NCBI GenBank assembly: GCA_977017575.1
Contig: CDRNVI010000002.1
Span: 558,001 to 622,000 of the forward strand
Direction: 5' to 3'
Origin: Paramoeba atlantica
Lineage: Eukaryota; Protista; Discosea
DNA: 64,000 nt
The notes below the pieces were generated by a model. It searched no databases. It saw only the letters and a list, made by a program, of their open reading frames with translations, and was not told the DNA's origin. The position numbers and the translations under genes were made by a program. Shown here one piece after another: positions 3,079-62,387 of this stretch (the stretch's first letter is position 1; every line of letters begins with the position of its first letter).

Positions 3079-3109
<31 letters not shown>
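1367..3109 (+). mobile_element. 5'-truncated CRE-clade element, family A1 (ORF remnant 1367-2585, common 3' UTR, poly(A))
   Basis: GGFGIRS, RWISQSGKG, RHN, RPGDVY, LDFAVT motifs. A20 on the left and A29 on the right. Confidence 0.9.
2597..2819 (+). ncRNA. Conserved structured RNA core of group-A 3' UTRs (exemplar copy; function unknown)
   Basis: Helices 2597-2607/2697-2707, 2621-2630/2660-2668, 2632-2651 (GCGA loop), 2709-2720/2809-2819 and GGUC-GAAA-GACC. Compensatory changes between variants. Confidence 0.7.
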
Positions 3110-6030: not shown

Positions 6031-9000
6031 AACAACAACAACAACAACAAAGACACTGATACATATGTATCAGCTGGGGGGTTTACAATTTACACCATAA
6101 ACATAAACACTTCTCCATGTAAACTCACATAAAATTTACGCGCAAAGAGTCCATCTGCAGCCAAGAACTCGTGCATCCTCATTACTTTCTTATGAGAATG
6201 GCCCTATAGGGCGAAAATGTCCTCCAACTCACCTCCCATACACTTGGCCACCTTATCTGCTGGCGAAACACAACTAAAACAAATAATAACGTATAAATAC
6301 AATTTATAAATATATATATAAATATATAAATATATGAACAACCCTTCGTCTCACAACCCCCTCTTCAACTGCTGAAACAGACCAATTGATCGCATTATTG
6401 AATATAAAATAAAAGTAAAAATAAATAAACAAAATAAATAAAATGATACTCCATTCAACTTTTGGGCTTCCAAAATCACGTTTTAGAAGAAGAGCCCCCC
6501 CCCCTTTCGAGTTCTCTTGCACTCCTCTTCACAATTAGCTCGCTTTCTTTGTGGATTCTTTCTTGCTAAAGTTACCTCTGCTAATCCTGGTGAATATGCA
6601 TTCGTACTCCTCTTTCCATCAGTTTTTCGTGCTTTTTGGTTGCTGTGCGTATTCGTATTTTCACGCTTGTTCTTGGATCTTGATCGTTTCCCCTTTTCAT
6701 TTATCAGGTTACCTTTATTTTTCGTGCTTATAGAGTGCGTAGGAGACATTTCGATAGGTGTGTGCGCAAACTCTGGTAATTTCGTATTTTTGTTTTTGTT
6801 CTTTTTCATATTGTTTTGAATTTCGTTACCTTTCCTCTTTTGATTGGTCACGATATCAAAACCGCGGTAAGTAAAGGAAGGGTTTTCGTCTTGATGTGCG
6901 CAAGCTCGTTTAGCGAGCCAGTCTGAGGTTGCGTTGTGCGGGTTTCCTTCATGCCCTCTGGTTTTGATGCAATATACATTGCTATTTTGCTCGATCTTAG
7001 AACACAAAAGTTGTATCTTCTTGAGTAGTTGTGCGCTCTGGAATAATTGAAACCCAACTATGCAAAATCGATGCCTTATAATGTGGAAGAATTCCCATAC
7101 GTATTTTGAGTCTGTGTGTAATACAATGTCCTGCCCATAATGTGCCGCAAGATTCAGTGCCTCATATACGGCATAGAGCTCTACCGCAGTTATGGTGAGC
7201 TCAATATCCGTTGGAGGTCGTACTCCCATTAAGGACTTCTCAATACCATCCCCCCACCACACGATTCCGCATCCAGAAGTAACTTTCGATTTCGTTGTTT
7301 TAAGAGAGCCATCAGTATACATGTGTACGGCTGGAGAAATATTTGGGAATGGCAATGCGCCTTCTTCGACGAATTGTAGTGATTTATATTGACTCTCTTT
7401 TCGTGCAACCATTGCTCGTTTTTCCCATGATTTTGCTTCGATGGGTACATAATCAGGGCGTGGTTCGATCCGATTTCGTAGTCGATCAACGCTTGACCTC
7501 CATAAGGCGCGGTCCCGAGACGAATGTATGACTTCTTCTATTGAAAGATTTAAATCTTTTGCGCATAATTCAGAGATCGAAGGATATGATGATTTGTCTT
7601 GCACGCGCCACAGAATGGCTAGGCTAAACGGCGATTCATGTCGAACGAGATGGCCAATAAGTTGAGCACGTTGTATTTTTGATGTTGTGCTGAGTTTCAA
7701 GTCATCTTGATAAAGAGATTCAAGACGAATGCACTTTCCCGTTTTCCATCTTTTCCCTACTCCGCATACCCATCTTCGCATTTTGCTGACTTGTACGTCC
7801 AATTCGCTCATTTGATTCGATGAAATATTCCACGTGCCGCAGTTGTAATTAATAACAGGCATAACAAGTGTTCGAAATATTTTTAACCGACTTGCGACTT
7901 GAATGGGTGAGTTCCATATCGCATGAAGTTTATGCATTGTGGCCCATCCTAGACGAATGCGTTCTTGTGGGGCTACATGACGATTTTCATTCTCTTGTGT
8001 ACTTCCAAGATATTTATATTTGTATACTCGGGGGATTTCTCCAACACTTGGGACTAGAAGGGGAGCTGTCATGTCATCAATTTTTCCTAGAACCATCCAT
8101 GCGGTCTTGTTTTTGCCCAGATTTACCTGAAGGTTTGCCCTCTTTGCATACTTGCACAGGTTTTCTAGCATTTCGGAGAGTTCAGACCTAGAAGAAGCGA
8201 AGAGAACTACGTCATCTGCATATGCCACATCAGAAATTCGGAGGTGCCTTTCGCCGCGACTCTTCGTCCCGGTGGAATAAGCAATGACACCCAACCCCTT
8301 CGCGTCAATGGCCTCTGCCATAATCCTGTCGAGGACCATAATAAAGAGATATGGCGCGAGCACATCCCCTTGTAGAGTACCATTTTCAATAGAAAACGAT
8401 TCGGTGTCACCATGAGGCGTCCTCACATAAGATTTCAGGCCTTCATACATGCTCATAATAACTTTAGTAATATTTTCCGGTATGTGGAATGCTCTCAGCG
8501 CATCTCGTATTGCAGAGAAAGTAACGGAAGGAAATGCCTGCTTAAAGTCAACAAACGCTACCGCAACACCTTCTCCCCTCGAAGCTTTAGTAGCTATTTC
8601 CACGAAAGTTGCCTGTGCGCCGGCAGTGGATCGGTGCGGGCGAAATCCAAACTGATTTGAGCGAAGCATATTCTCAACGGCTGGTTGTATACGCTCTAGT
8701 ACCATCCGGTTCATTACCTTTACCACATGGTTTACAATGCATATCGGTCTCCAATTTGTAAGATCATTGAGATTCCCTTTCTTTGGAAGTGGCACTTGCA
8801 GAATCATCTTCCATTTATCCGCCGCGGCACCGGTACACATTACTTCATTTATTATGTTCAAGAGCATGCCAAGTGCTCCTTCGCTCTGAGCCAATGTAGA
8901 GAGAGCCTCAATAGGAATGTTGTCGGAGCCTGAAGCTTTTCCAGATTTGACTTTTTGCAGAGAAATTCTGAGCTCCTTTAGGGTAAATTCCGTATCCTCA

Positions 9001-10806
9001 ATACCAATTAAGCTTTTATTACAGTTAGGGAAGTTTACCGGTTCGGAAATTTGATTTAATTGGTTACCTATCGCCTGAAAATGTCCTCTCACTCTGCACA
9101 TACTGTCTCGAACATTTTCACCAAACATGGAGAATACTTTTCGATTTTCCCCTACAATATAGCGAATTGCTTGATACGCGCTTTTTGGACATTTATATAG
9201 CTTTTCTTGGATCACTTCACATTCTTCTTTCACGCATTCTTCAATCATTTTTCCGTGTTCTCGAGCAAAGGTATCGAAAGTCCTTCGATTTCGAGCAATT
9301 TGCACAATAGTTTTCATATCAAGGGAATGCGAGTCAGTTTCCGAGTCAGGAGCTTTTCCAATATTGGCAATTTTCCTGGGTAATTTCTCTGCGGCGGAGT
9401 TGACTGCGGACGATAGCTTATCCCATAAAGCGGGGCCAATTGACCCTTCTCGTGACCGTTTATTTCCCCCCTGAATTGACTCCTCCACATTTTTCACGAA
9501 TGTATCACATATGGTTTCGTTTCTCAAGGATCCCCAAAACGGTTGTAACTTACCAGGTTTGCATGCCACTCTCCATTTTATATTTAATCCTGCTATTACT
9601 GCACAGTGTCTCGTAGGTATGGGAGCCAAAAGCACCTTCTGATACCGAAATGCTGAGCTGAAACGGGAATTTATTATGATATGATCAAGCTGTTTTGTTA
9701 GACCATCAGGGTGTTTCGGCGTAGGTGGAAACCTATAAGTCCACTTTCTTTCTGCGCTGCAACATTGATGAGCCGATTTAGATCCAAGGGTTACCAAAAA
9801 TTTGCGAAATTCTTGCGCTCTTTCCGAACAACATTTTCTGCCGTTTGGATCTTGCAAAGGTGCGTTCATGTCTCCGCATATTAGCTTTAGCGAACATTGT
9901 GAATCATGCCAAGAATCAAATAGCTCCTCATCAAACGATTCTTGCTTCTCTTTCTTTGCACCAGCCGTCGGGGAGTAAACATTAAATATACACGCCTTCA
10001 TCTTTCCAATATGCATTGTTCCTTTCATAATGCGATCATTGATCTTTTCAACACCCATGGGTTGCAGACTCAGCATTGCCATTCCGTTATAGCCCTTTAT
10101 TGCACTCATAATATATATATTAACACTAATGCCAGCCAGATAGAGCCTACGATGAATGATCGGTTCCTCGCTCTTGAACGATAGTCGCGTTTCCTGCAAG
10201 GCCATTATTGTTACGCCGTAACTTCGCATGAACTCTACAGCTTGATGCAAACGGAAACATTTACGTAGAGCAAACTCGTCTGTGGTTTTACACTTTAAAG
10301 TATCTACATTCATGGTGCTTACTGCAAACCCCTCTCTCATAGCTTTGATCTTGGGTCTCTGCTCTCGGTAGCCACGCCGAAAGCAGGATTTGCGTTTCCG
10401 ATTACGTTTGCGCAAAGATTTTGGAAGCAGTCCAACTCTGCCGCCTAGCACATGGATACGATCATCTCTCGGAGGAAACGGGAGAAGGCGCCCATTCATC
10501 AAGTCGTACTTGACGAGCCAACCAGACCCATCAAGCGATGAGTGAACCACCCCTTCCCAGAGTGTAATACGTTCGTTATAAGCCATACACCAAACAACAG
10601 CCACGTGTTTTCCCACAGCCAAAACCTTTGACATCTGTAAAAGGGCCCGCTGCCGGAGTTTTGTCCCAACCCCCCTCTGCTGTGGAGGCAGAAAAAGGTT
10701 GCCCCGACCACACCTGGCCGTCCGAAGTTTGCCACAGACTTCCAACACACTTTCGAACGGTCCGGAGGCCTCCGCCATTTTGTACCAACGTATTAATACA
10801 AAAAGT
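6031..10806 (-). mobile_element. Full-length RTE-like LINE with APE-RT-RNase H ORF and (GTT)6 tail
   Basis: TSD-bounded. (AAC)6 at 6031-6048 on the plus strand. 18-bp palindrome CTGATACATATGTATCAG at 6056-6073. Short 5' UTR. Confidence 0.92.
6483..10778 (-). CDS. Intact 1431-aa polyprotein: Tudor/SH3-like N-terminus, AP endonuclease, reverse transcriptase, RNase HI
   Basis: APE: TMNVDTL, LQETR, NVYSPT, GDMNA, LDHII. RT: QGDVLAP, YADD, YKYLG. RNase H: YTDGS, VELYA, HTDS, GHEGNPHN..D. Confidence 0.93.
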   Translation of the reverse strand: MAEASGPFESVLEVCGKLRTARCGRGNLFLPPQQRGVGTKLRQRALLQMSKVLAVGKHVAVVWCMAYNERITLWEGVVHSSLDGSGWLVKYDLMNGRLLPFPPRDDRIHVLGGRVGLLPKSLRKRNRKRKSCFRRGYREQRPKIKAMREGFAVSTMNVDTLKCKTTDEFALRKCFRLHQAVEFMRSYGVTIMALQETRLSFKSEEPIIHRRLYLAGISVNIYIMSAIKGYNGMAMLSLQPMGVEKINDRIMKGTMHIGKMKACIFNVYSPTAGAKKEKQESFDEELFDSWHDSQCSLKLICGDMNAPLQDPNGRKCCSERAQEFRKFLVTLGSKSAHQCCSAERKWTYRFPPTPKHPDGLTKQLDHIIINSRFSSAFRYQKVLLAPIPTRHCAVIAGLNIKWRVACKPGKLQPFWGSLRNETICDTFVKNVEESIQGGNKRSREGSIGPALWDKLSSAVNSAAEKLPRKIANIGKAPDSETDSHSLDMKTIVQIARNRRTFDTFAREHGKMIEECVKEECEVIQEKLYKCPKSAYQAIRYIVGENRKVFSMFGENVRDSMCRVRGHFQAIGNQLNQISEPVNFPNCNKSLIGIEDTEFTLKELRISLQKVKSGKASGSDNIPIEALSTLAQSEGALGMLLNIINEVMCTGAAADKWKMILQVPLPKKGNLNDLTNWRPICIVNHVVKVMNRMVLERIQPAVENMLRSNQFGFRPHRSTAGAQATFVEIATKASRGEGVAVAFVDFKQAFPSVTFSAIRDALRAFHIPENITKVIMSMYEGLKSYVRTPHGDTESFSIENGTLQGDVLAPYLFIMVLDRIMAEAIDAKGLGVIAYSTGTKSRGERHLRISDVAYADDVVLFASSRSELSEMLENLCKYAKRANLQVNLGKNKTAWMVLGKIDDMTAPLLVPSVGEIPRVYKYKYLGSTQENENRHVAPQERIRLGWATMHKLHAIWNSPIQVASRLKIFRTLVMPVINYNCGTWNISSNQMSELDVQVSKMRRWVCGVGKRWKTGKCIRLESLYQDDLKLSTTSKIQRAQLIGHLVRHESPFSLAILWRVQDKSSYPSISELCAKDLNLSIEEVIHSSRDRALWRSSVDRLRNRIEPRPDYVPIEAKSWEKRAMVARKESQYKSLQFVEEGALPFPNISPAVHMYTDGSLKTTKSKVTSGCGIVWWGDGIEKSLMGVRPPTDIELTITAVELYAVYEALNLAAHYGQDIVLHTDSKYVWEFFHIIRHRFCIVGFQLFQSAQLLKKIQLLCSKIEQNSNVYCIKTRGHEGNPHNATSDWLAKRACAHQDENPSFTYRGFDIVTNQKRKGNEIQNNMKKNKNKNTKLPEFAHTPIEMSPTHSISTKNKGNLINEKGKRSRSKNKRENTNTHSNQKARKTDGKRSTNAYSPGLAEVTLARKNPQRKRANCEEECKRTRKGGGLFF

Positions 10807-11540
10807 GGCCAAGCTCAGATTCGCAGCCATGGCTGTCGAATCGTATGGATCTTGGTCCCCAAGCGCTATGGCCGTCATTCGAGATTTATCGGTCAACCGG
10901 TCACTCCAATCCGCGAACCTATCCAAAGCAGACGCATTACACGCACTGTTAACTGCCCTGAACATTACCTTGATGAGATCACAAGCGCGAATGATGGTGC
11001 TGCGCTCTCCTCCCACCCCCGATTCAGACCTCGTAGGCTACGGCTCCGAGCTTTGAGAACTACGTGATTCTCGCCCCCCCCCCCATTCACCAGCCTGAAC
11101 CCGTCGGGTGTTGGTCGAGTCGGCAGGACCTATACTCACACCTAGCCCCCGTCGGCTAGGTACCCCAAGTGAGGTAGTGCCCGGGGAGGGGACCCTGCCC
11201 CTCCTCGTCGGCCACCACCTGGTTCTGTGACTGTTCCGCTGCCGGCGTAGGCCCATTGCTTGCGCCCTCTCGTACAACAAGAGCAGGGTTACCAAGGCAA
11301 GCTGGGAGAGGCCGAAAGACCCGGTCCAGAACACGTAAGGAAGGTTTTCCCTGGGCCGACTCCTAGCAAAAGCGCAGGGAGTCCTCAACCTCCCCAATGA
11401 GTTTGGAAGTCGAGTGAGGAAAGCGAAGGGAAGTAAAGGAAAGGAACGAAAAGGAAAAGCAAAGGGAGGTAAAGAAAGGGAGGTAAAGGAAGTGAAAGGA
11501 AAGAAAGAAGTCGTGAAAAAAAAAAAAAAAAAAAAAAAAA

Positions 11541-11994: not shown

Positions 11995-12272
11995 TTCGTA
12001 TTCGCTCTATTACAGCAATCTCTTCTTCACTTGGTTCGCCTTCTTCTTCTTTAGTGTCGGTCTCAAAGGAAAATTCTTCCACGGCATCATCGGATTCAAT
12101 ATTTATGTTGTCGACATTTACTTCAGGTTCTTGAGGAGAGATGTCAGGATCCATATTAGAACCATTTTTTTTGTCCAAACCATGTGCCTTGCAAATCTAA
12201 TCCTCTCGAAAATAAATTTATATTTCTTTTTTCAAACATGAGAATTTATGATTGACCCATCAAAAGAAGCTC

Positions 12273-12363
12273 TGTCAACGTTCAACACCCAATTCTGAGA
12301 ATAGTGACCAATAAAGATCATTTTCCGTGTCAACGTTCAACACCCTATTCTCAGAATAGTGAC
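12273..12363 (+). repeat. 36-bp direct repeat (12273-12308 and 12328-12363)
   Basis: TGTCAACGTTCAACACCC(A/T)ATTCT(G/C)AGAATAGTGAC, 2 mismatches. Confidence 0.9.
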
Positions 12364-12367
12364 TTTC

Positions 12368-12438
12368 ACTGTAGTCCAGTTGGTAAAGGGGTTCTATTTT
12401 GACGCTGGACGGCCGCGGTTCGGTTCCCGACACCGACA
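12368..12438 (+). pseudogene. Degenerate tRNA-like sequence (A-box/B-box-like)
   Basis: TAGTCCAGTTGG at 12372-12383 and GGTTCGGTTCC at 12417-12427, with tRNA-like spacing. Acceptor and anticodon stems do not pair properly. Confidence 0.3.
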
Positions 12439-12861
12439 TTTTACTAATAAAAATGAAAAAAAAATTGCTCAAGTTCGCAAAAAAAAACAATTTCGGAACG
12501 ATTTTTTTTTATTTTTTTTCTCGAAAAAGTGGCCAGCTGGTCACCAAAAACACGGTTTGCTTTTTGTAAACCGTTACCCCCCCTTACTTCGCCTCCCCCC
12601 TTACTTTACCACATTTAGTCACTGGACGTGTGGTGAAGTAAGGGGGGTGTCAGATTTTTCTCCAGACAACTTACCACCTCTTTACACACCCGGAGGGCTG
12701 CACTGCAACCGACTGTTGCATCGGGGTAAGGCGAGGCAGGGCCACGCCCAGTGGTCTTCAAAGGGGGGGACATAGATGGCGCACAAAGATCGATGCACAA
12801 AGGTTCTTTGTGCAACTTTCTTGGTGAAGACGACGCCGTCATACCGGGATTTTAAACCACA

Positions 12862-12938
12862 GTCAAAATATAGAGGCAATGCCGCGATTCATACTTCTCC
12901 CCCCTTATTAATTGCAAAAAAAAAAAAAAAAAAAAAAA
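12862..12938 (+). mobile_element. Very short tail-only group-A copy
   Basis: Last ~54 nt of the common 3' UTR plus A23. Confidence 0.85.
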
Positions 12939-12939
12939 C

Positions 12940-12975
12940 CTTTAACGATAAAGATACAGTTTCTGTACCTTGTTG
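12940..12975 (+). other. Spliced-leader (mini-exon)-like sequence at 5' end of CRE A3
   Basis: CTTTAACGATAAAGATACAGTTTCTGTACCTTGTTG contains the ACAGTTTCTGTAC core of kinetoplastid/diplonemid SL exons and ends in TTG. No GT intron follows. Confidence 0.8.
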
Positions 12976-13012
12976 ATTTTTCTTTCTCTTTATTGCTTAC
13001 TAGGGTCGCACC

Positions 13013-16000
13013 ATGCCGCCCGATGATTCCTTTGATGCCAACGCGTTACCAATGGATGATGACTCTTTTCGCCAGGAACAAATGTCACACAAACCCGGAG
13101 ATTGGGACCAATTCGCAGGAAACGCTCACCTGATTTCCGGCCAAAGCACCTACAATGAACTTTTGTATACGACACCTATCCCCGAAAACGTACCTAAACA
13201 CTGGACCGAAAGAGCCTACAAGATCGCGGCAGAGGAGCCTACACCGGACACAGGCAGAATGACCGCGGACGAAGAGACAAATCACTCCCTTGTCGTGGCA
13301 AACAACGTGGGAATTACTTTGGAGGCCTCATCCGCCCACATTTTCTCTCCAACTAAGGCTACAAAGCGCAAGAATACTGATTCTGCCCCTACCACATACC
13401 ACAACGCCAATACGCAGCAGAAGGATGTAGAACGTCAATGCCCAGCAGAAGGATGTACGTGGAAAACCCCACCACATAGCGGAAAATGGCAGGCATTTTA
13501 TCACCATGTAGCTCATCGACACGGCAAAAACATTCCAAACGAGTGGTGGGAGGGAGAGGGAAGATTCCTCTGCAGAGATTGTGGCAGACACTACGCCAAG
13601 AACAAGCTCAAGTCTCACCCCAAAAACTGCAGGGGCCGCAACAATTCCGGACGGTCATTAGCCCCACCAACGGCACGTCCCCAAAACGCAGAAGAAAATC
13701 CAACAGACAATTTGCCATCACTCGGCTCCATCTGCGCACTTCCCATGAGTACCTGCAAAGACGTTCCACACTGTTGCAGATTCCTCTGGGCGAGCATCCT
13801 CACGCAATCCTTGACATCCGCAGTGAAGGAAAACACGGTAGAGGCATGGACACTTCTCGCAATGCTCCCTAAGTGTGTCCTACCAGCACCTTTCCGAGGC
13901 GGTCGCAAAGGCCACACATCATACTCTACGTACGTCGAAAACCGCATGAAACTGTGGCTAGCGGGGGAGTACCTCTTGCTATGGGAAGATGCCCAGAGGG
14001 ATCATTATAAAAAGCGCTCCAGATCACGCGACTCCGAAATCGATGCAGACAGAGCGGCAATTCGAGCCGAACTCTTGGCCCGCCAGGGGGAATTTTCCAG
14101 GGGAATGGCAGCCCTAACCGCAGCCCCCATGGCGCCAGACAATGCAGATACCCTCGAAAAGCTCTTGGAGAAGCATCCAGACCCACACGAAAATCCCTTG
14201 CAGAATGATCTACCACCGATCGAGGGCAACCCCCTACACCTAGAGGAAACAGAGGTCAAAAAAGCGATCGTCAGCTTCCGCAGGGGATCTTCAGCCGGCA
14301 CGATGGGCCTTCGCCCAGAGCACCTCCAGGCAGCCATCTTGGAACATGTGGACAAGGATGTGAATCCTCTCTCGGCCCTCACGCGACTAGTGAACCACAT
14401 GCTTCAAGGAAAAGCGCCACAAGACGTCCAATCATTCTACGCTGGAGCCCGGCTCTGCGCCCTGGAAAAAGGCGAGGACGATGTTCGACCAATCGCAGCG
14501 GGTGAAACCCTTAGACGCCTCGTAAGCAAGGCGGCATGTATCTCGATAAAGGAGAAAGCGGGTACTCTGTTCAACGGGCGACAATATGGTGTAGCAGCCC
14601 CCGCGGGAGCCGAACGAGTTATCCACCTCTGCCGGAGAGCCATGCTCAATAACCTGGGGAGTGACAATTTTGTCTTCTGCAAAGTGGACTTAAGAAACGC
14701 TTTCAATAACGTCAGCAGGCCTGTTCTCACCCTAACCACGCGCTTAAATTTCCCCGAACTCTCACCTTGGGTAGAGTGGTGTTACTCCAACGTGAGCTGT
14801 CTTACCTACAGAGACAATGTCATACCCTCGGCAGAGGGGGTACAACAAGGAGACCCACTAGGCCCTCTTCTCTTCTCTCTAGTACTATCCAGTGTAACAG
14901 AAGAAATATCGTCTCGGTCGAATCTAGACACTCAACTTTGGTACCTAGATGACGGGGTACTCATAGGGGAGGCTGAGGAGGTCAGGAAGGCGCTCGATGT
15001 TTTTTCCAATGTTGGCTCCCGATGCGGACTTTTCCTAAACCCATCGAAATGTGAGATAATAACACCGCCTGCTTCATCCCATCTCACAGGATTATTTCCA
15101 GAGATACCGAAGACTAAAACTCGTACTGATGGAAATTTCGACATCTTGGGCTCCCCGATTGGGTCAGCGGAGCATTGCGTGGAGTTTCTCAGGTCAGAAG
15201 CCATTGAGCCCGCACGCGAAACATTAGACGCAATAGGTTTCATAGGAGACCCACAAGTAGCCATGTCCCTCATCCGGCAGTGCACTGGATTCTGTCAAAT
15301 GGTCTACGCACTTCGCACGACACCCCCTCAGGCGCTTTCTGAGCTTTGTAATTCCCTTGATGAAAATGTTCTAAAAGCCGCGGAATGGGCACTTTTCCCT
15401 CTGGATTCCCACGCGCGTGACCAAATCCAACGTAAGAAGCGCAACGGGGGTTTTGGTCTCAGGTCTTCGCTCCTCCACGCAACAGCAGCATATGTCTCCT
15501 CCGTTGCGCACGCCGCCGATGCAGACGATTGGGACCCTTCAGAAGCCGAGGGATTCACCATTTCCGTGCAAGACGTGAATAGAAAGGCGGGGGTAGAACT
15601 TGTGGATCCCGGTACAGGACGCATCCCGAAACAGAATAAACCACATCCAGAGTCCAGCCAAAGACACAACCTCACCTCGAGAAGCAAACGCCCACGACAC
15701 ATACTCAACAACATGGACGCGGATAAGACGGCCGAGCCGGAAATGGTTATACCCCGGCAGCAGCAACTGAGCCAAGCCATATCGCAGCAGGAATTCACTA
15801 CAGCCTACGGCCAGGCCGACCCCCGCACCCGAGCACGATGGGTTTCACAGTCAGGAAAGGGAGCTGGGAGCTGGGCCTTCGTCACGCCCTCAAGGAGTAA
15901 AGGTTTTGCTTTCACACCAACCGAGTTCCGCACGTTATCGCGCTGGTGGTTTGGCATGGACATTTATGGCCAAGACCGCCCCTGCACAGCAAACGGGTGT

Positions 16001-16603
16001 TCCCTACCCCTACAGAAAAATGGGGAGCATGCATTATTGTGCAAGAACGGACATGGCCTCATCACGCGGCACAATGCGCTTTGTGTAGAATTCGCCTCCT
16101 TTTGCAGCAAGGCCAACATGGCTCCCCAGCGAGAAAAAAGTCTAGGAAATCGGGGGCCAGGAGGGGGTCTCACCAGACCGGCTGACGTTTTCCTCCCCAC
16201 GTACACTCTAGGGAAAGGCATGGTACTAGACTTCGCAGTCACCCACGCACAGCAAACAAAGTATTTGGACTCTGTCCGGAATGCTAGCTGGGTGGCTGCA
16301 GGGTCTTTCGCCGAGCATTACTCAGAAACGAAGGAAAAACAACGTCAAGAAGCAGAAGAAGCACAACTAGGGTTCACGGCCATGGTTGTCGAGTCTTTTG
16401 GCTCGTGGAGTAAAAGCGCAATGGCGGTCTTATGGAAGGTGGGAGCACTGCGCGCCAACTCGTCAAAAGGTCTTCTCACGGATGCTCAAGCCCGAAATGA
16501 CCTTCTGAAAGAGCTTAACGTCACACTCATGCGCTCTCAGGCCCGCATGATGGTCTCCCGGATAGTCGTCAGTGACCCCCAAGCTCCCCTGGAAGGGGAG
16601 TAG
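13013..16603 (+). CDS. 1196-aa CRE polyprotein: two N-terminal zinc fingers, RT, zinc knuckle, RLE
   Basis: CPAEGC..HVAHRH, CRDC..H..C, GVQQGDPLGP, WYLDDG, CTANGC..HALLC, RPADVF, LDFAVT, VESFG. Confidence 0.93.
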   Translation: MPPDDSFDANALPMDDDSFRQEQMSHKPGDWDQFAGNAHLISGQSTYNELLYTTPIPENVPKHWTERAYKIAAEEPTPDTGRMTADEETNHSLVVANNVGITLEASSAHIFSPTKATKRKNTDSAPTTYHNANTQQKDVERQCPAEGCTWKTPPHSGKWQAFYHHVAHRHGKNIPNEWWEGEGRFLCRDCGRHYAKNKLKSHPKNCRGRNNSGRSLAPPTARPQNAEENPTDNLPSLGSICALPMSTCKDVPHCCRFLWASILTQSLTSAVKENTVEAWTLLAMLPKCVLPAPFRGGRKGHTSYSTYVENRMKLWLAGEYLLLWEDAQRDHYKKRSRSRDSEIDADRAAIRAELLARQGEFSRGMAALTAAPMAPDNADTLEKLLEKHPDPHENPLQNDLPPIEGNPLHLEETEVKKAIVSFRRGSSAGTMGLRPEHLQAAILEHVDKDVNPLSALTRLVNHMLQGKAPQDVQSFYAGARLCALEKGEDDVRPIAAGETLRRLVSKAACISIKEKAGTLFNGRQYGVAAPAGAERVIHLCRRAMLNNLGSDNFVFCKVDLRNAFNNVSRPVLTLTTRLNFPELSPWVEWCYSNVSCLTYRDNVIPSAEGVQQGDPLGPLLFSLVLSSVTEEISSRSNLDTQLWYLDDGVLIGEAEEVRKALDVFSNVGSRCGLFLNPSKCEIITPPASSHLTGLFPEIPKTKTRTDGNFDILGSPIGSAEHCVEFLRSEAIEPARETLDAIGFIGDPQVAMSLIRQCTGFCQMVYALRTTPPQALSELCNSLDENVLKAAEWALFPLDSHARDQIQRKKRNGGFGLRSSLLHATAAYVSSVAHAADADDWDPSEAEGFTISVQDVNRKAGVELVDPGTGRIPKQNKPHPESSQRHNLTSRSKRPRHILNNMDADKTAEPEMVIPRQQQLSQAISQQEFTTAYGQADPRTRARWVSQSGKGAGSWAFVTPSRSKGFAFTPTEFRTLSRWWFGMDIYGQDRPCTANGCSLPLQKNGEHALLCKNGHGLITRHNALCVEFASFCSKANMAPQREKSLGNRGPGGGLTRPADVFLPTYTLGKGMVLDFAVTHAQQTKYLDSVRNASWVAAGSFAEHYSETKEKQRQEAEEAQLGFTAMVVESFGSWSKSAMAVLWKVGALRANSSKGLLTDAQARNDLLKELNVTLMRSQARMMVSRIVVSDPQAPLEGE

Positions 16604-17160
16604 GGCCCACAGGCATGGTCCTCTAGGGTAACAAGACGATTAGGGTGCTGGTCGCGTCGACAGAGTCTATACTCACGCCTAGCTCGCGAGGGCTAGGTAC
16701 CCCAAGTGAGGTAGTACACGGGCAGTGAATCTCCTCCCCGTCGGCCAGCATCCTGTTTCGCGACCGTGTCGCTGTCGACACAGGCCCGCGCCTGCGCCCT
16801 CCCATATAACAAGGGAAGGGTTCACAAGTCAGGCCGTGGAGTGGTCGAAAGACCCGGTCCGGAACGCGCGAATGGATTGGGTCTGGATTGCTCGTTTTTA
16901 TTTTTACTGTGCCTTGTTTGTCGTATATACTTAGCGGAGATTGAATTGCTAGTTTTGGGCTGAGAAAAAAAAAGAAAAAAAAAAGAAGAAGAAAAAAGAA
17001 AAAGAAAATATACTTCTGTGGAAATAAAAAGAATTGCCAATTTGATTGCTTGTTTTAAATTCATATACCCCCCTAATGGACCTACTATGTACTTGGTTCG
17101 TCTACTGGGTCAAAATATAGAGGCAATGCCGCGATTCATACTTCTCCCCCCTTATTAGTT

Positions 17161-17194
<34 letters not shown>

Positions 17195-17196
<2 letters not shown>

Positions 17197-17949
17197 CAAC
17201 AAGGCACGAATGCTTGTAAGACGCATGGCAGACGTGGATATCCATGCCAGTCTCGCTTTACTGAACGAGGCACCCTCTGACACCACACCAAATCGTGCCA
17301 GCTGCGGACCGGCAGGAGCGATCGAGCCTACAGTGCCTATTCTCACGCTTCGCCTTCGTGAGTGAGGTACCCCAAGGTGAGATAGGTAGGGATTCGGACT
17401 GACAGTCCTATTTCAGCACGAAGACGCCATGGTATCCAGGACGGGTGCTGGTCGGGTCGACAGAGTCTATACTCACGCCTAGCCCGCGAGGGCTAGGTAC
17501 CCCAAGTGAGGTAGTACACGGGTAGTGAATCTCCTCCCCGTCGGCCAGCATCCTGTTTCGTGACCGTGTCGCTGTCGACACAGGCCCGCGCCTGCGCCCT
17601 CCCATATAGCAAGGGAAGGGTTCACAAGTCAGGCCGTGGAGTGGTCGAAAGACCCGGTCCGGAACGCGCGAATGGATTGGGTCTGTATTGCTTGTTTTAG
17701 TTTTTACTGTTTCTTGTTTGTAGTATATACTTAGGGGAGATTAAATTGCTAGTTTTGGGCTGAGAAAAAACAAAAGGTACATCTGTGGAAACACAAAGAT
17801 TTGCTAATTTGATTGCTTGTTTTCAACTCGTATACCCCCCCAATGGACCTACTTGGTTCGTCTACTGGGTCAAAATATAGAGGCAATGCCGCGATTCATA
17901 CTTCTCCCCCCTTATTAACTGCAAAAAAAAAAAAAAAAAAAAAAAAAAA
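17195..17949 (+). mobile_element. Chimeric truncated copy: last codons and start of 3' UTR of another group-A family (17195-17400) joined to the A4 tail
   Basis: KARMLVRR matches the QARMLVRR C-terminus. Variant GGTACCCCAAGGTGAGATAG. 17398 onward matches 21838 onward. Confidence 0.75.
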
Positions 17950-17985
17950 CTTTAACGATGAAGATACAGTTTCTGTACCTTGTTG
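17950..17985 (+). other. SL exon-like sequence at 5' end of CRE A4
   Basis: One A>G difference from 12940-12975. Confidence 0.8.
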
Positions 17986-18031
17986 AATTATTTTCTTTAT
18001 TTCATCTTTTCCAGGTACGCGGTTCTTTCTC

Positions 18032-21000
18032 ATGTCTGAAGACGATCTTCTCAAAGCCTCACCTCCGCCGATGGACGACGATTCATTTTTACAAGAGGAA
18101 GCAGTACACAATAGAGGATCCTGGGACCAGTTTGCTGGAAACGCACATCTCATTAAGCAACGGAGTACGTACAACGAATTGCTCTACACGACCCCTATTC
18201 CTGCGAACATTCCGGAAGAATGGAACATGAACGCCGCCTTGATCTCAACTGAGAACCAGACACGTGATACGGGACAGGTAGATAGTAGCGATGAGGAAAC
18301 AAACCACTCACGAGTCATCAGATTACATCATGGACACCAAAAAATGCAATCTGATAGTAACACTATCACTAAAAAGTTTACTCGATGCCAACCATCTTCC
18401 ACACCCCCAAGCGTCAAAGGGAATCGGGGAATCGTAAAGTCTCATCGAAAAGCGCGCGAACCAGCTACACCTCGAAAAGGGGAAGCGACGGAACATAACC
18501 CCGAAAACAACTCTCCACGCCAAATAATACAAGGAACTTCCCTTGAAATCCCACCTTCGACGAGCGAACCAGTTCTCACGTTTCCATCTTCCCAAAACCG
18601 TCCGACACAAAGGGAGTGCCCCGCAGAAAACTGTATTTGGAAAACTCGTGCCCATGGAGGTCAATGGCAGTCGTACTACAACCACGTTGCTTACCGACAC
18701 GGAAATAACATACCCAATGACTGGTGGACAAAGGAAGGACGATTTCTCTGCGACGCATGCGGTCGTCATTACGATATTAGCAAGAAAACTTCTCATTTGA
18801 ATCATTGTAAAATGCAATCTACACCGCCCTCCTCGCAGCCGCCCTCACAACCACAGCAGCCTTCACAGCTGTCAGAGTCCGGAGAAGCCATGTACGATAT
18901 GCAAGGTACGCATAGTCTACCGTCCCTAGAGGAAGTTTGCACGACCCAAATAAGCACGTGCAAGGATGTCCCACACCGATGTCGATATCTGTGGACCAGA
19001 ATTTTTACCGCAGCCCTCTCCACCGCGGTAAACGAAAACTCACTGAGAGCCTGGACCCTTCTTGCCTTGCTTCCGAAATGCGTCCTACCAGCCCCGTACC
19101 GAGGAGGCCGTAAAGCTCACAAGTCCTATACCTCCTACATCTCAAAGCGAATGGAACTTTGGATACAAGGCCAATATACCACCCTATGGGCCCAAGCAAA
19201 TTCGGAGCATGACAGGAAGCGCTCAAAAGTGCCGAATAATGAGATTGAGGGTGAAGAAGACAAGGCTGCAATACGGGCTGAAATTCTGGTTCGCCAAGGA
19301 GAATTTTCCCGAGGCATGGCTGCCCTTACTGCAGCTCCACTTGCACCATACAGCGAGGAAACCCTGCTAAAGCTGCAGGAAAAACACCCCAGCCCCCATG
19401 GTAATCCGATCTCGTGCCCCCTACCTCCCCTGGAAGAAGAAGCTTTAAAACTGGACGAATCCGAGGTAAGAAAAGCAGTAGATACCTTCCGTCGCGGATC
19501 CTCTGCTGGGACTATGGGGCTCCGGCCTGAACACCTCCAAACAGCGCTTCAAGAGCACGTCGACCAGAATATGAATCCTCTTACGACGCTCACTTCCTTC
19601 GTAAACCATCTTCTAGCTGGCAAAGCCCCAGACGAAGTGCAACCTTTTTTTGCAGGGGCACGGCTATGCGCACTCGAAAAAGGGGAAGATGACGTGCGGC
19701 CTATCGCTGCGGGGGAAACCCTTAGACGCCTGGTGAGCAAGGCAGTATGCCTTTCGATAAAAGAAAAAGCAGGATCCTTCTTTGGACGTCGTCAATACGG
19801 AGTCGCAGCGTCTGCTGGGGCGGAAAGAGTGATACACCTTTGTCGCCGTCTAATGAGAAATAATGAAGAAAATGAGAACATAACGTTCTGTAAGGTGGAT
19901 CTTCGGAACGCCTTTAATAACGTGAGCCGACCCGTCTTCATCTTCCTCACACGAAAGCATTTCCCTGAACTATCCCCATGGGTAGAATGGTGTTATGCCA
20001 ATCATAGCTGTCTTACATTCGGCGATGATTTTATCCCCTCGGCAGAAGGAGTGCAACAAGGAGACCCTCTGGGCCCACTCCTCTTCTCTTTGGTGTTAGC
20101 AGAGGTAACAGAAGAAATTGCATCAAATTCTAACCTACGAACACAATTATGGTATTTAGATGACGGTGTGCTTGTAGGTGATCCCAAAGAAGTCCGTAAA
20201 GCCCTAGACGTCCTCGACGAGATAGGACCGAAGTGGGGACTCTTCCTGAATCTCTCCAAGTGCGAGATCATTACCCCCCCAGCATCAGCTCATACATCCG
20301 TTTTCTTTCCTGACATCCCCAGTGATAAAATACGGTACGACGGGAACTTCGACATTCTTGGAAGCCCAATAGGCTCTGCGGAACACTGTGCGGAGTTTCT
20401 CATGACACACGCGATTGAACCAGCCCGCGAAACATTAGAAGCTACTGCTGTGTTAGAAGATCCCCAAATAGCTCTCGCACTAATACGGCAATGTTCGGGG
20501 TTTTGTCAGATGGTGTACGCACTGCGCACGACTCCTCCCCAAGCCCTTGGAGAATTATGCCAAAAACTTGACTCTCATCTAGTCCAGGCCGTGGAGCACG
20601 CAATTTCTCCCTTAGGCGTCGCCGCTCGCGACCAAATACAACGACCAAAACGCCACGGCGGGTTCGGACTTCGCTCATCAATTCTCCACCAGTCAGCAGC
20701 CTACGTTTCTTCCGTCGCGCACGCCGCTAGCTTGGACAACTGGGACCCCACAGAAGCTGAGGGATTTTCCAGCTCAGCACATGACATAAATGACAAAGTT
20801 GGGACTGATCTGGTTGATCCATACACTGGACGCATTACCAAACCTAGCGTGCCTGGTTAATATCATGCAAATCGGAGCATCCTTTCCCGCCCAGCGAAAA
20901 GAAAACTCGCACTATCCCTCAATCACTCCCTTCTCCCGGTCTCGACGGATCAGGAAAAGATCATCCCGAGGCAAAAACATCTCAGCCAAGCTATCTCGGA

Positions 21001-21831
21001 TAGGGAATTTCAAACGGCATATTCAAAGGCAGACGCAAGAACGCGGGCGCGATGGATCTCGCAGTCCGGAAGAGGGGCCGGAAACTGGGCTTTCGCAACT
21101 CCCTCCAAGACCAGAGGCTACGCTTTCACTCACACGGAGTTTCGTACCCTAACACGCTGGTGGCTAGGCATGGACGTCTTCCCCGAAGATCGGCCTTGCC
21201 CAGCTGACGGGTGCACCCTTCCCTTGCTCAAGAATGGAGAGCACGCTTTGCTCTGCAAGAACGGCCATGGTATCATCTCACGGCACAACGCTCTGGCCCA
21301 ACAATTTACATCGTTCTGCAGCAGAGCCTTCCTGGCGCCACAGAGAGAGAAGAGTTTGGGAAATCGGGGTCCTGGGGGGCTCTCACGAGACCAGCGGACG
21401 TATTTCTGCCAACGGCCTCCATCGCCAAAGGATCTTTAGCGCAAGGCATGGTCCTAGATTTTGCGGTCACTCACGCACAGCAAACAAAGTATTCGGACTC
21501 AGTCCACAATGCTAGCTGGGTGACCCCGGGGTCTTTTGCTGAGCACTTCGCGGAGACCAAGGCGCGACAGCGACAAGAAGCAGAAAAAGCAGGACATCTC
21601 TTCACAGCGATGGTGGTGGAATCCTTTGGTTCCTGGAGCGAGAGTGCGCTAGCGTTACTCCGGGACATCGGAACCCAACGGGCGAATGCGTCCAAAGGGC
21701 TCCTTTCACGAGACCAAGCGCGAAACGATCTCCTAACGGATCTGAACGTGACGCTAATGCGTTCTCAAGCCAGGATGATGGTTTCGCGCATCCGCGTAGA
21801 GGACCCAGCGGATCCTTTGGTAGAGGCTTAA
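18032..21831 (+). pseudogene. CRE A4 polyprotein with an in-frame TAA (20858-20860) and a 1-nt frameshift near 21380
   Basis: Homology to 13013-16603 continues in frame past the TAA. RPADVF reappears in another frame after the G-run near 21380. Confidence 0.88.
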
Positions 21832-22362
21832 GCCTCTACTGACAGTCCTATTTCAGCACGAAGACGCCATGGTATCCAGGACGGGTGCTGGTCGGGTCGA
21901 CAGAGTCTATGCTCACGCCTAGCCCGCGAGGGCTAGGTACCCCAAGTGAGGTAGTACACGGGTAGTGAATCTCCTCCCCGTCGGCCAGCATCCTGTTTCG
22001 CGACCGTGTCGCTGTCGACACAGGCCCGCGCCTGCGCCCTCCCATATAGCAAGGGAAGGGTTCACAAGTCAGGCCGTGGAGTGGTCGAAAGACCCGGTCC
22101 GGAACGCGCGAATGGATTGGGTCTGTATTGCTTGTTTTAGTTTTTACTGTTTCTTGTTTGTATTATATACTTAGGGGAGATTAAATTGCTAGTTTTGGGC
22201 TGAGAAAAAACAAAAGGTACATCTGTGGAAACACAAAGATTTGCTAATTTGATTGCTTGTTTTCAACTCGTATACCCCCCCAATGGACCTACTTGGTTCG
22301 TCTACTGGGTCAAAATATAGAGGCAATGCCGCGATTCATACTTCTCCCCCCTTATTAACTGC

Positions 22363-22389
<27 letters not shown>

Positions 22390-22600: not shown

Positions 22601-22812
22601 GTTCATTTCATAAGTACGGCCTTTTGATGAAAAGCGAAATTTACAACGTCAGTCCAAAGAATAAGAGAAAGAAAGTAGCATTCAAAGTCATGGCAGAAAG
22701 ATTCCTAGCCACTTTTAAGAACTAAGTGGTATATTATTATTATTATAAAAAAAAAAAAAAAAAAAGGCAATCTTTCTGGATGCCTGCATCTTGACAAGAT
22801 TACTGTATATGA

Positions 22813-22828
22813 TTTCTGTACCTTGTTG
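22813..22828 (+). other. 3' half of SL exon-like sequence heading a SLACS-like element
   Basis: TTTCTGTACCTTGTTG followed by a pyrimidine-rich tract and ATG at 22856. Confidence 0.65.
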
Positions 22829-23302
22829 ATTTTAATTTTCTATTTTTCTACGCTTATGACACGCCTTTCTCGTACGTCTTCTCGTTTAGATTCCGAAAAC
22901 ACGCGGAAAAAGGGCAGCAGAACAACAGTGAACAACGGGAAGTCTCACGGGAGAGTTGAAAAACAACGTACTCAACGAGATCAAAGCAAGACGAACGGAA
23001 TAAAGGTAGCAGAAGAATCAGGATCGCACACGGAGACACCAGTGAAGGTGAAGAAGACTCCAAAGATCAAGATAATAGGTTCCAAAACACTAGCCTTCCC
23101 GGCGAAAGAAGAAAGTACCCGAGGAGCGACCTCCACCGCCACCGCTTCCGCCACCGCCACCACCACCACCACCACCAACACTCCAGCCGCCGCTCGCGCA
23201 TTCGCCGCCCTCGCCCGCTCCACCGCCATCTCCTCCACATACGCCTCATCGGTCGCCACCTCCAGCGTTGCCGCTGCCGATGTCTCCGCCAAAGAAGCAA
23301 AC

Positions 23303-24014
23303 CCCCTTTTTGTAATACCCCCTTTTTGTTTATCCTAACTGGGTCGCCACTGCCACGGCATATCCTTTTGGGTGCGTCAGAAGGGGAAGATGAGGTCAGG
23401 AGCCCGGCATTGGACCGTTGCCGGTGATGGGGCGTGGCGACCCCAGCCTTCCGACGTAAGGGTTTCCGAGCTGGCAGGAGGGAATGTGTCCGTTCCTATT
23501 CCTGTTCAACCCTTGTTCGCGGCGTCGTTAACCGCGTTCCGGGGCATAGACGGGGTAGCATCCCGTCGCCGAGGCATGTATGTCGTTAGCGAGCGCGCTA
23601 ACCCTACCCCCTCGGTGGAGGTGGAACGGCATTGGTGCTAGCTGAGGTTTTATCCCTCCCCATCTCCCGGAGAAGCGAAGGGACTGGATCCTTTTTTCTA
23701 GGCTAGGTCCTTCGTTTCTCCACGCTAGGAGCGCTCCTGGACTAACAATCCGGAGCAGTGGAGTTTTTAGCGAGTGAGCTACCAGAGTCTCTGACGCAAT
23801 CCGAGATTCAACAAAACTCTGGTAAGCAAGTCTCGCACTACCCTGTAATGGGGTGTCTCCCCTGAGGTGTGTGGGTGGAAACACCCATTCATCTTGCCAC
23901 TGGAAGGTGGCCAGCTCACTCGACCAAGAAAAACCTGCCGGTTGGACACCGGGTGGCGGTCGAGGCGGTTGAGGCAAAGATTTTCTCCATGTACGAAAAA
24001 AAAAAAAAAAAAAA
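23303..24014 (+). mobile_element. Non-coding, highly structured poly(A)-tailed retroposon (SINE-like or LINE 3' UTR copy)
   Basis: 12-bp TSD AAAGAAGCAAAC (23291-23302, 24015-24026), poly(A) from 23996, many hairpins, no credible ORF. Confidence 0.78.

Positions 24015-30618: not shown

Positions 30619-30626
<8 letters not shown>
28415..30626 (-). mobile_element. 5'-truncated RTE-like LINE with ~550-nt structured 3' UTR (its 5' tip continues at 36208-36222)
   Basis: RT ORF and conserved terminal stem. GKNRKAQGPDG is restored when the CRE block 30627-36207 is removed. Confidence 0.88.
28964..30619 (-). pseudogene. RTE-like reverse transcriptase (5'-truncated)
   Basis: KAQGPDG, YRPISI, DLEKAYD, GLKQGCRMS, YADD, FSYLG, FAGHVARM. 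Confidence 0.92.
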
Positions 30627-30654
<28 letters not shown>

Positions 30655-31010
30655 CTCCTCTTTCTCACCTCTTGACATACTTTTCCCACCTTTCTCCCTA
30701 CTTTCCTGCTTTCCCCTACCCAACTTTTCAACTTTTCAGGGGGGGTAAGGTCTCCCTCAGCTTCGCCTCACCCGGCCTGCAGGCGGCTCCTCAACCATTC
30801 GCGCGTTCCGGACCGGGTCTTTCGACCTCTCCACGGCCTGACTTGTGGACCCTTCCCTTGTTATACGGGAGGGCGCAGGCGCGGGCCTGTGTCGACAGCG
30901 ACACGGTCGCGAAACAGGATGCTGGCCGACGGGGAGGAGATTCACTACCCGTGTACTACCTCACTTGGGGTACCTAGCCTTGACGGACTAGGCGTAGAGG
31001 CCTTTTAGAG
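30627..31010 (-). mobile_element. Tail-only group-A variant (common core + different purine-rich distal end) with poly(A)
   Basis: Core matches 2632-2830 and diverges after GCGCGAATGG. Ends in a long T-run on the plus strand at 30621-30654. Confidence 0.85.
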
Positions 31011-35607: not shown

Positions 35608-35653
35608 AGAACGAACCGCGTACCTGAAAAAGGATGAAATATAGAAAATAATT

Positions 35654-35689
35654 CAACAAGGTACAGAAACTGTATCTTTATCGTTAAAG
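35654..35689 (-). other. SL exon-like sequence at 5' end of CRE A5
   Basis: Reverse complement identical to 12940-12975. Confidence 0.8.
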
Positions 35690-62359: not shown

Positions 62360-62387
62360 TTTTCTTCCATACACCATCTTCCAGACC

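Follow-up and report, generated by a model that had tools for sequence, protein, structure and literature searches.

Dispersed R2/CRE-type retrotransposons headed by the host spliced leader exon

LINE-like elements must rebuild their 5′ expression signal at each new locus, a problem that is acute under polycistronic transcription and spliced leader (SL) trans-splicing. In the 64,000-nt stretch of DNA analysed here (the window), copies of such elements carry an SL exon at their 5′ ends, and the question posed is how such a copy, having no promoter and no acceptor, can give rise again to an authentic SL 5′ end. The SL-headed units of the window and their immediate context are the following:

12916–12938, plus strand: 23-nt poly(A) of the 5′-truncated unit 11995–12938, the insertion context of element A1
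12939, plus strand: single additional C separating the A run from SL nt 3
12940–12975, plus strand: SL exon nt 3–38 of element A1, identical to the exon of contig L012 and ending at its last base
12976–13012, plus strand: 37-nt 5′ leader of A1, T-rich at 12976–13001, with AG at 13002–13003
13013–16603, plus strand: intact 1196-aa ORF of A1 (ATG at 13013) with zinc fingers, reverse transcriptase (RT) and restriction-like endonuclease
16604–17194, plus strand: 3′ tail of A1, common to several families, with poly(A) at 17163–17194
17950–17985, plus strand: SL exon nt 3–38 with one A to G change, heading element A2
17986–22389, plus strand: element A2, with a 46-nt T-rich leader, AG at 18013–18014, the shared tail and poly(A) at 22363–22389
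22813–22828, plus strand: last 16 nt of the SL exon; the T-rich leader that follows has no AG, and the ORF after it is 160 aa long and of low complexity
30621–35653, minus strand: element A3, with leader at 35653–35608, ATG at 35607 and poly(A) at 30654–30621
35654–35689, minus strand: SL exon nt 3–38 heading element A3, with a 20-nt poly(A) and extra CGT upstream
62329–62359, plus strand: SL exon nt 8–38 (first 7 nt absent), preceded by a 22-nt poly(A) and 3 nt that do not match
62360–63446, plus strand: group-B derivative with a 28-nt leader, AG at 62383–62384, ATG at 62388 and a 352-aa ORF

The first 25 nt of the A1 leader are 84% pyrimidine. The SL of A2 directly adjoins the 27-nt poly(A) of the 5′-truncated unit 17195–17949, and the A2 ORF (start at 18032, 942 aa) carries the RT. 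The ORF of A3 is interrupted by an early stop, its RT ORF lying at 31615–35403, and the unit headed at 22813 has its poly(A) end at 23996–24017. A preliminary description of this DNA had reported a shared SL-like exon at 12940, 17950, 35689 (minus strand), 62329 and, in part, 22813, and both coordinates and sequence are confirmed. Its further statement that full-length copies start with the SL stands for the group-A heads; the head at 62329 leads not a full-length element but an RT-less derivative, in whose ORF 89 novel residues are joined to the group-B endonuclease C-terminus. The window also contains an APE-type LINE (6032–10802), which carries no SL.

The 36-nt block at 12940, 17950 and 35689 (minus strand) is the host SL. 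It corresponds to exon nt 3–38 of a bona fide SL RNA gene on metagenome contig L012, where the identical 38-nt exon is followed by GTATGAGAAGC (intron GTATGAG), and it terminates at the last base of that exon. L012 is a 1.78-kb SL-5S repeat unit, 5S gene included, with contig ends that overlap each other, and it shows every feature of an SL RNA gene that was tested, i.e., a GT 5′ splice site, a structured intron, an upstream promoter and a tandem array with 5S. The 23-mer GATACAGTTTCTGTACCTTGTTG has four copies in the window (12953, 17963, 35676 on the minus strand, and 62337), with none expected from 100 shuffles. In three RNA contigs of the same species, a match to the SL and short leader at or near one end gives way to different sequence; these contigs, together with the L012 gene, its GTATGAG intron and its 5S neighbour, bear out the preliminary identification of the 36-mer. 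A gathering scan of the window with Rfam gave no match, and no diplonemid SL family came up; a full-text literature search with an SL 16-mer was negative. The SL resembles but is not identical to the one in Diplonema papillatum, and this resemblance, together with the nearest named protein relative, suggests a euglenozoan assignment.

The A1 protein has N-terminal C2H2-like zinc fingers (residues 142–205), an RT (residues 486–694) and a C-terminal CCHC + RHN + RPAD..D.A endonuclease. RVT_1 was found in three group-A ORFs (E-values of 1.5e-17, 7e-19 and 8e-14), and the best PDB matches of the RT are R2 RTs. Pfam has no HMM for the endonuclease region, the motifs of which (C-x4-C..H..C, RHN, RPADV ... 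LDFAV) were read in the translation; it aligns through to a SLACS-annotated D. papillatum protein and to the group-B protein. That D. papillatum protein, annotated ‘SLACS 132 kDa’, is the nearest named relative (32% identity over 984 aa), and the apparent likeness to the CRE clade is an annotation-level similarity to it alone. An RT, a C-terminal restriction-like endonuclease, N-terminal zinc fingers and a 3′ poly(A) (20–34 nt at each 3′ end) are all features of that clade; its fixed insertion site inside the SL exon of SL RNA genes was not seen at 10 heads and 24 tails, a sample drawn from transposon nests. An exact database look-up of the A1 protein returned no record, and an atlas search with the element protein gave generic RT clusters only. 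No SL was found within reach of the D. papillatum homologue locus (L007) or of metagenome relatives (L008–L011), but the cross-species comparison says little because L007 lacks the N-terminal 230 residues.

Ten heads from eight families were compared, five in the window and five from the same assembly, ENA ERZ24900291 (three on L001, two on L013), the total sample being 160 kb of transposon nests, not SL arrays. All ten show the same order: a flank, either the poly(A) of the preceding unit or different sequence, 0–4 extra nt, the SL, a T-rich leader and an ATG. The extra nucleotides vary by head (none, C, T, CT, CGT, GC or TAGA), and the start at SL nt 3 is accompanied by varying extra nucleotides even inside one family (L001 head 1 versus head 2; A2 versus A3). 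In every case the SL ends at the last base of the exon and passes directly into the element leader. None of the ten is followed by a GT intron, as the preliminary description had also observed, and none has the stuttered SL that truncated relics in series would form. Comparison of the 1.7 kb upstream of the L012 SL gene with every head context revealed no similarity to the SL promoter; the idea that the 3′ tail of the upstream element mimics this promoter was rejected on the same ground. Over SL nt 9–38, the eight heads retaining those nucleotides show 1 mismatch in 240 nt, while the proteins of SL-headed families share 52–75% aa identity and the A2 and A3 leaders are 13% diverged. Near-invariance of the SL against such strong divergence of leaders and proteins suggests that it is either renewed or constrained. 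Target-site duplications around SL-headed copies are unreadable because both flanks are A runs. One head (L013 head a) shows a GTTG duplication at its junction, typical of a DNA-level 5′ join.

The T-rich leader is likewise present at all ten heads. The preliminary description read it as a polypyrimidine-AG acceptor belonging to the element; the tract proves universal and the AGs at 13002–13003, 18013–18014 and 62383–62384 are where it placed them, but an AG is present in only 5 of 10 leaders and 4 of 8 families, which is chance level. In the L001 family the first AG sits inside ORF codon 2. The ‘own acceptor’ reading is therefore unsupported, and a dedicated acceptor as a general feature was rejected. 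Copies lacking the tract, with the SL joined straight to post-AG sequence, had also been envisaged; they number 0 of 10 heads, and no such joint occurs in the DNA contigs of three sequencing runs.

Copies truncated at their 5′ ends start at poly(A) without an SL, both in the window (11995, 17195 and 46344) and on L002, L003 and L006, in agreement with the earlier claim. All 24 canonical tail/poly(A) ends and all 10 heads lie in A-tract or transposon context, flanked by no SL promoter, split exon or intron; 19 of the tails adjoin non-SL sequence and 5 adjoin an SL. The retroposed units begin with a DNA-encoded SL and end in poly(A), and their heads have none of the GT 5′ splice site, intron, upstream promoter or 5S-linked array of an SL RNA gene. 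From the uniform head layout, the absence of intron and promoter and the SL-free truncated copies, it follows that the SL belongs to the transposed RNA and not to the target. The preliminary description had proposed the same and named poly(A)-SL-GT-intron right junctions as the observation that would speak against it; no such junction was seen among these ends. Its view that SL exons are being seeded outside the SL array likewise agrees with the A-tract and transposon context of the heads.

The elements are very probably non-LTR retrotransposons of R2/CRE type, encoding zinc fingers, RT and restriction-like endonuclease and moving through an RNA intermediate with the complete 38-nt SL at its 5′ end, and the T-rich leader that follows the SL very probably belongs to the element, its AG not being a conserved acceptor. 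Such an RNA would have the 5′ end of a normal host mRNA, so that a full-length cDNA would start from SL nt 3 and have, in the place of the modified cap nucleotides, a few that are untemplated or misread. The observed start at nt 3 and the extra nucleotides are consistent with an RT stop at cap-modified nucleotides; in D. papillatum cDNA, loss of the 5′-most A has been put down to cap modification (PMC10161547, supplement). The cDNA would be inserted into A tracts, mainly the poly(A) tails of earlier copies, giving head-to-tail chains. The single RNA-type run contained no transcript of A1, so that for this element the RNA form was not directly observed.

The most likely source of the SL-headed RNA, to which we give somewhat less than even odds, is a small number of master copies joined to the last exon base of real SL RNA genes. 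These would be transcribed from the SL promoter with a start at +1, the dispersed copies in the window being their off-array progeny, and the SL on the RNA could also direct exact 5′ joining at SL genes. Both steps have precedents: SLACS of Trypanosoma brucei is transcribed from the SL promoter, starting at +1, and the 28S sequence on R2 RNA has been proposed to guide 5′ joining. Three observations were counted for master copies, namely the GTTG duplication of L013 head a, the fixed site in SL genes occupied by all named CRE-clade elements (PMC12278014) and a junction on L004. There, positions 1420–1488 are the SL intron from G1, immediately after a tail poly(A) and TT; this tail-poly(A)-TT-GTATGAG junction fits a master copy at an SL promoter, one of two template sources put forward in the preliminary description, but retroposition of a free SL intron, or a template jump by the RT, would account for it equally well. 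The other source put forward there, an RNA spliced at an upstream acceptor since lost, is likewise still a candidate. Weighing against master copies is the massive insertion into A tracts, given that SL-gene residence would need a second target mode or long persistence in the array. No copy behind an SL promoter was seen in the 160 kb of transposon nests; the D. papillatum SL genes lie in uniform SL-5S-U2 clusters, and the genome paper mentions no insertions there (PMC10161547). We put the probability of the whole reading, SL-headed RNA together with master copies, at roughly 0.45.

Alternatively, the SL may be added in trans by trans-splicing, an unlikely course in either of two versions. In its favour, the junction coincides exactly with the bond at the 5′ splice site of the SL RNA, and every SL has the host's sequence. 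In dinoflagellates trans-spliced RNA is known to be retroposed, and it has been suggested that SL relics there contain a TG acceptor (PMC12014239), and dispersed SL exon fragments in D. papillatum have been attributed to reverse transcription of mRNA (PMC10161547, supplement). In the first version the SL would be added once, to the RNA of SL-less masters having an AG before the T-rich leader, and SL-headed copies would be dead-end progeny; but eight families with as little as about 50% aa identity cannot be maintained by a master incapable of its own reproduction, and all ten copies that reach the leader carry the SL. In the second, splicing would recur each generation at the TG ending the DNA-encoded SL, with the pyrimidine-rich 3′ half of the SL as tract, and the old SL would be replaced exactly. 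This requires a non-AG acceptor, and use of canonical AGs would have left traces (stutters from those inside the SL, tract-less copies from those in the leader) that none of the ten heads shows.

That the DNA-encoded SL makes each full-length copy self-sufficient, either as a portable initiator or through a non-canonical TG 3′ splice site of its own, is doubtful overall. The initiator version, taken by itself rather unlikely, would have every full-length dispersed copy yield SL-headed RNA from an internal promoter, starting at or next to SL +1 behind an A tract that the element itself picks as target; nucleosome exclusion by this tract and the T-rich leader may help, and the SL would recruit the cap and translation machinery. 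In its favour, 8 of 10 heads across 8 families show an unchanging succession of A tract, SL and T-rich leader, the SL is conserved amid diverged surroundings, and the model explains how many families could last for long without SL-gene residence. The SL exon of Ascaris is an intragenic promoter element, but the kinetoplastid SL promoter lies upstream of the exon. Retrocopies in dinoflagellates have been proposed to use a TTTT box in the SL (DinoSL) as their basal promoter (PMC12014239), and Pr77 of L1Tc binds the SL-gene factors SNAP50 and TBP (PMC8190864). Against an initiator stand the lack of anything shared with the region upstream of the SL gene and the T runs just after the SL, which might end SL-type transcription.

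Renewal of the SL by an RT template switch is very improbable. By analogy with R-mediated strand transfer in retroviruses, cDNA made on read-through RNA would reach the internal SL copy, jump through the 36-nt homology to a cellular RNA bearing the SL and end at its cap; no promoter would be needed to explain why the SLs are identical and why copies stop near the cap. Template jumping comes readily to R2-type RTs, and the head-to-tail chains and extra junction nucleotides resemble jump products; however, efficiency should be low for a switch in trans over 36 nt, and many copies should continue into the upstream poly(A) and tail, where they are indistinguishable from nested insertions. The view that the SL is target DNA, a flank or target duplication left by insertion beside existing SL exons as in CRE and SLACS, was rejected as barely tenable, since the SL-gene specificity of the CRE clade (PMC12278014) and the 5 tail ends adjoining an SL are outweighed by the other 19 tails, by truncated copies that are SL-free on both sides, by SLs that always precede an element leader and ATG and never an intron or unrelated DNA, and by heads that are 5′-shortened and carry extra nucleotides, like cDNA ends.

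Several known systems share part of this arrangement. The CRE clade (SLACS, CZAR, CRE1 and CRE2) has the same single large ORF with zinc fingers, RT and C-terminal restriction-like endonuclease, poly(A) and a link to the SL, but its members occupy a single fixed site within the SL exon of SL RNA genes (PMC12278014), whereas the elements described here sit at A tracts and poly(A) tails and carry the whole exon on their own 5′ end, without promoter or intron. In the recycled cDNAs of dinoflagellates, as here, a DNA-encoded SL at the 5′ end of a retrocopy tags a retroposed SL-bearing RNA; DinoSL relics, however, are found on host retrogenes, where re-splicing leaves truncated relics in series (PMC12014239), while here the SL heads autonomous retrotransposon families as a single near-complete copy. 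D. papillatum has hundreds of exon-only SL pieces outside its SL-5S-U2 arrays, attributed to retrotransposon activity (PMC10161547, supplement), but these are treated as collateral mRNA retrocopies and are not linked to retrotransposon 5′ ends (PMC10161547); the one copy examined (L007) has no SL, and its N-terminal region is absent. L1Tc/ingi Pr77 also expresses a LINE in a genome without gene-specific promoters and binds SL-gene transcription factors (PMC8190864), though it is an element-specific 77-nt sequence giving unspliced transcripts. R2 has the same protein architecture; unlike R2, the present elements have a capped mRNA leader as their 5′ sequence and are dispersed. The 5′ end of R2 RNA carries host-gene (28S) sequence that could restore the 5′ junction by annealing to the target, the RNA is cut from a co-transcript by a ribozyme, and R2 stays in the rDNA.

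Two solutions to the problem of 5′ expression are known in Euglenozoa, residence in SL genes (CRE, SLACS and CZAR) and an internal promoter (Pr77 of L1Tc/ingi). In the present case, hundreds of dispersed elements related to the SL-gene residents take the complete SL exon with them. If the DNA-encoded SL does make each copy self-sufficient, a retrotransposon would have captured the universal 5′ module of host mRNAs as a promoter substitute, in a genome nearly without gene promoters. SL matches in such genomes may be mistaken for trans-splice sites or SL genes, and the SL head is a natural tag for full-length insertions. It also explains the scattered and so far unexplained ‘SL exon fragments’ of diplonemid genomes.

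The 23-mer GATACAGTTTCTGTACCTTGTTG occurs four times in the window against zero expected. Re-reading of the coordinates bore out the preliminary description in placing a spliced leader (SL)-like block at the starts of the elements, and its AG and ATG positions were also correct. The blocks are:

12940–12975, + strand, SL block of 36 nt, CTTTAACGAT..CCTTGTTG
17950–17985, + strand, SL block of 36 nt with one A>G change
35689–35654, − strand, SL block of 36 nt
62329–62359, + strand, SL block without the first 7 exon nt
22813–22828, + strand, SL block reduced to its last 16 nt

The 36-mer is the host SL, as had been proposed. Scanning JGI metagenome contigs with an SL 20-mer gave a single contig, L012 (Ga0316204_10168667), the minus strand of which reads ..gtagt / AACTTTAACGATAAAGATACAGTTTCTGTACCTTGTTG / GTATGAGAAGCTTCG.. 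Here the block sequence is a 38-nt exon, with a canonical SL-intron start directly after it; the intron (~72 nt) contains a GC stem-loop and ends in TTATTT. Compared with an intron copy on L004, a contig of the same ENA assembly as the window, it shows paired changes in the stem. The ends of L012 overlap to give a repeat unit of ~1.78 kb, as would be expected of a tandem array, and the unit has the classical euglenozoan SL-5S arrangement:

L012:1–1785, complete SL-5S repeat unit, SL RNA gene on the − strand and 5S on the + strand
L012:450–568, + strand, 5S rRNA gene (98 bits)

Three contigs of X5, the one RNA-type run with the same species label, align to the stretch solely along the SL and 9–17 nt of T-rich leader, at or near one contig end, and then continue into unrelated sequence. 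This suggests that transcripts carrying SL and leader exist, the kind of run (RNA) being a guess. Set against window 17961–18002, all three (records 25–27) pass from the SL into element-like T-rich leaders, and one is identical to the leader of A2 (the group-A element headed at 17950) for 13 nt, diverging after. The exon is similar, though not identical, to the Diplonema papillatum SL (PMC10161547 supplement). By the resemblance of its SL to that of D. papillatum and by the nearest named protein relative (below), the host is a euglenozoan, though a different one from D. papillatum.

Further contigs of the ENA assembly were reached via homologues of the 1196-aa ORF of A1 (the element headed at 12940), giving 10 heads in ~160 kb, of which the window has five, L001 three and L013 two. 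In every head the SL stops exactly at the last base of the exon and is followed by a T-rich leader of 24–46 nt and the ATG of the ORF. A poly(A) run of 17–31 nt precedes eight of the ten, separated from SL nt 3 by 0–4 variable nt (none, C, T, CT, CGT, GC or TAGA), and two are truncated within the SL. The head at L013:13129–13144, cut inside the SL with ~13 nt left before the leader and ATG, adjoins an inverted element tail instead of an A tract. No SL intron sequence was found 3′ of the ten heads, and the regions 5′ of them show no likeness to the 1.7 kb that precedes the SL gene on L012.

The preliminary description had also given each full-length copy its own polypyrimidine-AG acceptor. Such a tract is indeed present in every head: over their first 25 nt, the leaders are 72–84% pyrimidine and 40–68% T. 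A dedicated acceptor was rejected, because an AG lies between tract and ATG in only 5/10 heads (4/8 families) when shuffled leaders predict 4.1/10, because the first AG of the L001 family falls within codon 2, so that splicing there would delete the start codon, and because tract-less copies, with the SL joined straight to post-AG sequence, were absent from all ten heads and from the DNA contigs. The N-terminus of the called L001-family protein can be aligned in frame with A1, starting at residue 14.

The proposal that the SL is carried as part of the transposed RNA, and is not the target, was upheld. Among 24 canonical tail-plus-poly(A) ends, an SL head is next in five; the other 19 are followed by 5′-truncated element pieces or other DNA. 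Truncated copies start at poly(A) without an SL (window 11995, 17195 and 46344; also on L002, L003 and L006), so truncated and full-length copies share one insertion context, A tracts, and the SL is present only where the cDNA extended to the 5′ end. Target duplications of SL-headed copies are not legible, as A runs lie on both flanks. The extra nt before SL nt 3 vary within single families (L001 heads 1 and 2; A2 and A3, the latter headed at 35689); a start at nt 3 with variable extra nt is what would be given by cDNA ending on a cap-modified SL, and D. papillatum cDNA likewise lacks the 5′-most A of the SL (PMC10161547 supplement). As a control, a full-length APE-type LINE at 6032–10802 (− strand) has no SL and shows a 15-bp target duplication with an empty site at 542–556. 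We put at about 0.9 the probability that the SL forms the 5′ terminus of the RNA intermediate of the SL-headed elements.

The window is a retroelement nest, with RVT_1 ORFs throughout and the one APE-RT-RNase H LINE. That LINE has a 1431-aa ORF with its ATG only ~24 nt from the start, and sits in a duplicated segment (flanks 6017–6031 and 10803–10817), the uninterrupted copy of which, at 1–1265, supplies the empty site and target duplication. Besides C2H2-like fingers and an RT, the A1 protein carries at its C-terminus a CCHC / RHN / RPAD..D.A module, by its motifs a restriction-like endonuclease. Among solved structures the protein is closest to R2 proteins, and among named proteins to one of D. 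papillatum with the annotation 'SLACS 132 kDa'. Families are deeply diverged (52–75% aa identity), and despite this share a ~550-nt 3′ tail at 86–99% identity, the depth of which in DNA runs is ~50 times that of element bodies:

16604–17194, 17398–17949, 2552–3109, 22076–22389, 49826–50133 and 35693–36163 (− strand), shared 3′ tail

The unit headed at 62329 is possibly a non-autonomous derivative: its ORF (62388–63446) joins 89 proline-rich residues to a group-B endonuclease C-terminus, without an RT, and this C-terminus is 78% identical to residues 772–1030 of the group-B ORF at 46582–49677. The 22813 head belongs to a short unit whose ORF is of low complexity. Between 11975 and 24017, seven poly(A)-ended units (W, X, A1, Y, A2, a 376-nt unit and the 22766–24017 unit) lie head-to-tail in one orientation with zero unique DNA between them, a chain that may have grown by insertion of units into one another's poly(A) tails, or by RT template jumps that joined units end to end.

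SL nt 9–38 show one mismatch in 240 nt across the eight heads keeping them, and the adjoining leaders diverge by 13% inside one family and by much more from family to family. The SL is therefore not just inherited passively but is renewed or kept by strong selection. As a source of SL-headed RNA we tentatively rank first master copies that would lie where exon meets intron in genuine SL genes, with the SL promoter driving their transcription. SL genes are where the CRE clade resides (PMC12278014), and such masters would explain the exact junction, perfect SL and cap-type 5′ end without a new mechanism. Also in their favour are an SL intron from G1 at L004:1420–1488, directly 3′ of tail-poly(A)+TT, TGAGAAGC pieces 3′ of two other poly(A) runs on L004, and a GTTG duplication at the junction of L013 head a. 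The L004 junction is not decisive, however, since a retroposed free, debranched SL intron explains it equally well. The same junction in eight diverged families makes masters unable to reproduce their own head implausible.

The SL-intron-like unit at L004:1376–1495 (contig ctg3930l; GTATGAGAAGC.., GC stem-loop, ..TTATT, then A7) begins at its own first base right behind element tail, poly(A) and TT; its origin is either the retroposition of a free SL intron or a retrocopy of read-through RNA from an element at the SL exon/intron bond. Two more poly(A) runs have the octamer TGAGAAGC behind them, at L004:1056 and 1399, and part of a stem-loop occupies 862–891.

Trans-splicing variants, a TG acceptor included, rank second and are unlikely. 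If a DNA-encoded head were re-spliced canonically, the products would be stutters, through the internal AGs of the SL (nt 15–16 and 21–22), or tract-less copies, through the leader AG; neither was found in the ten heads. In dinoflagellates, stutters do arise from re-splicing at a site inside the SL relic (PMC12014239). Self-initiation at dispersed heads is about as unlikely, and RT template switching is very improbable.

Overall, the original observation is confirmed and its interpretation is borne out in part, for the SL as passenger and not for the acceptor. A literature search found no account of dispersed, A-tract autonomous retrotransposon families with a complete SL 5′ end. Known CRE elements are residents of SL genes, whereas the elements described here are dispersed at A tracts and themselves begin with a complete SL. 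Dinoflagellate SL relics are found on retrogenes, and here the SL is on autonomous retrotransposon families. The scattered SL exon fragments of D. papillatum were put down to mRNA retrocopies (PMC10161547); here, in contrast, the SL copies are retrotransposon 5′ ends.
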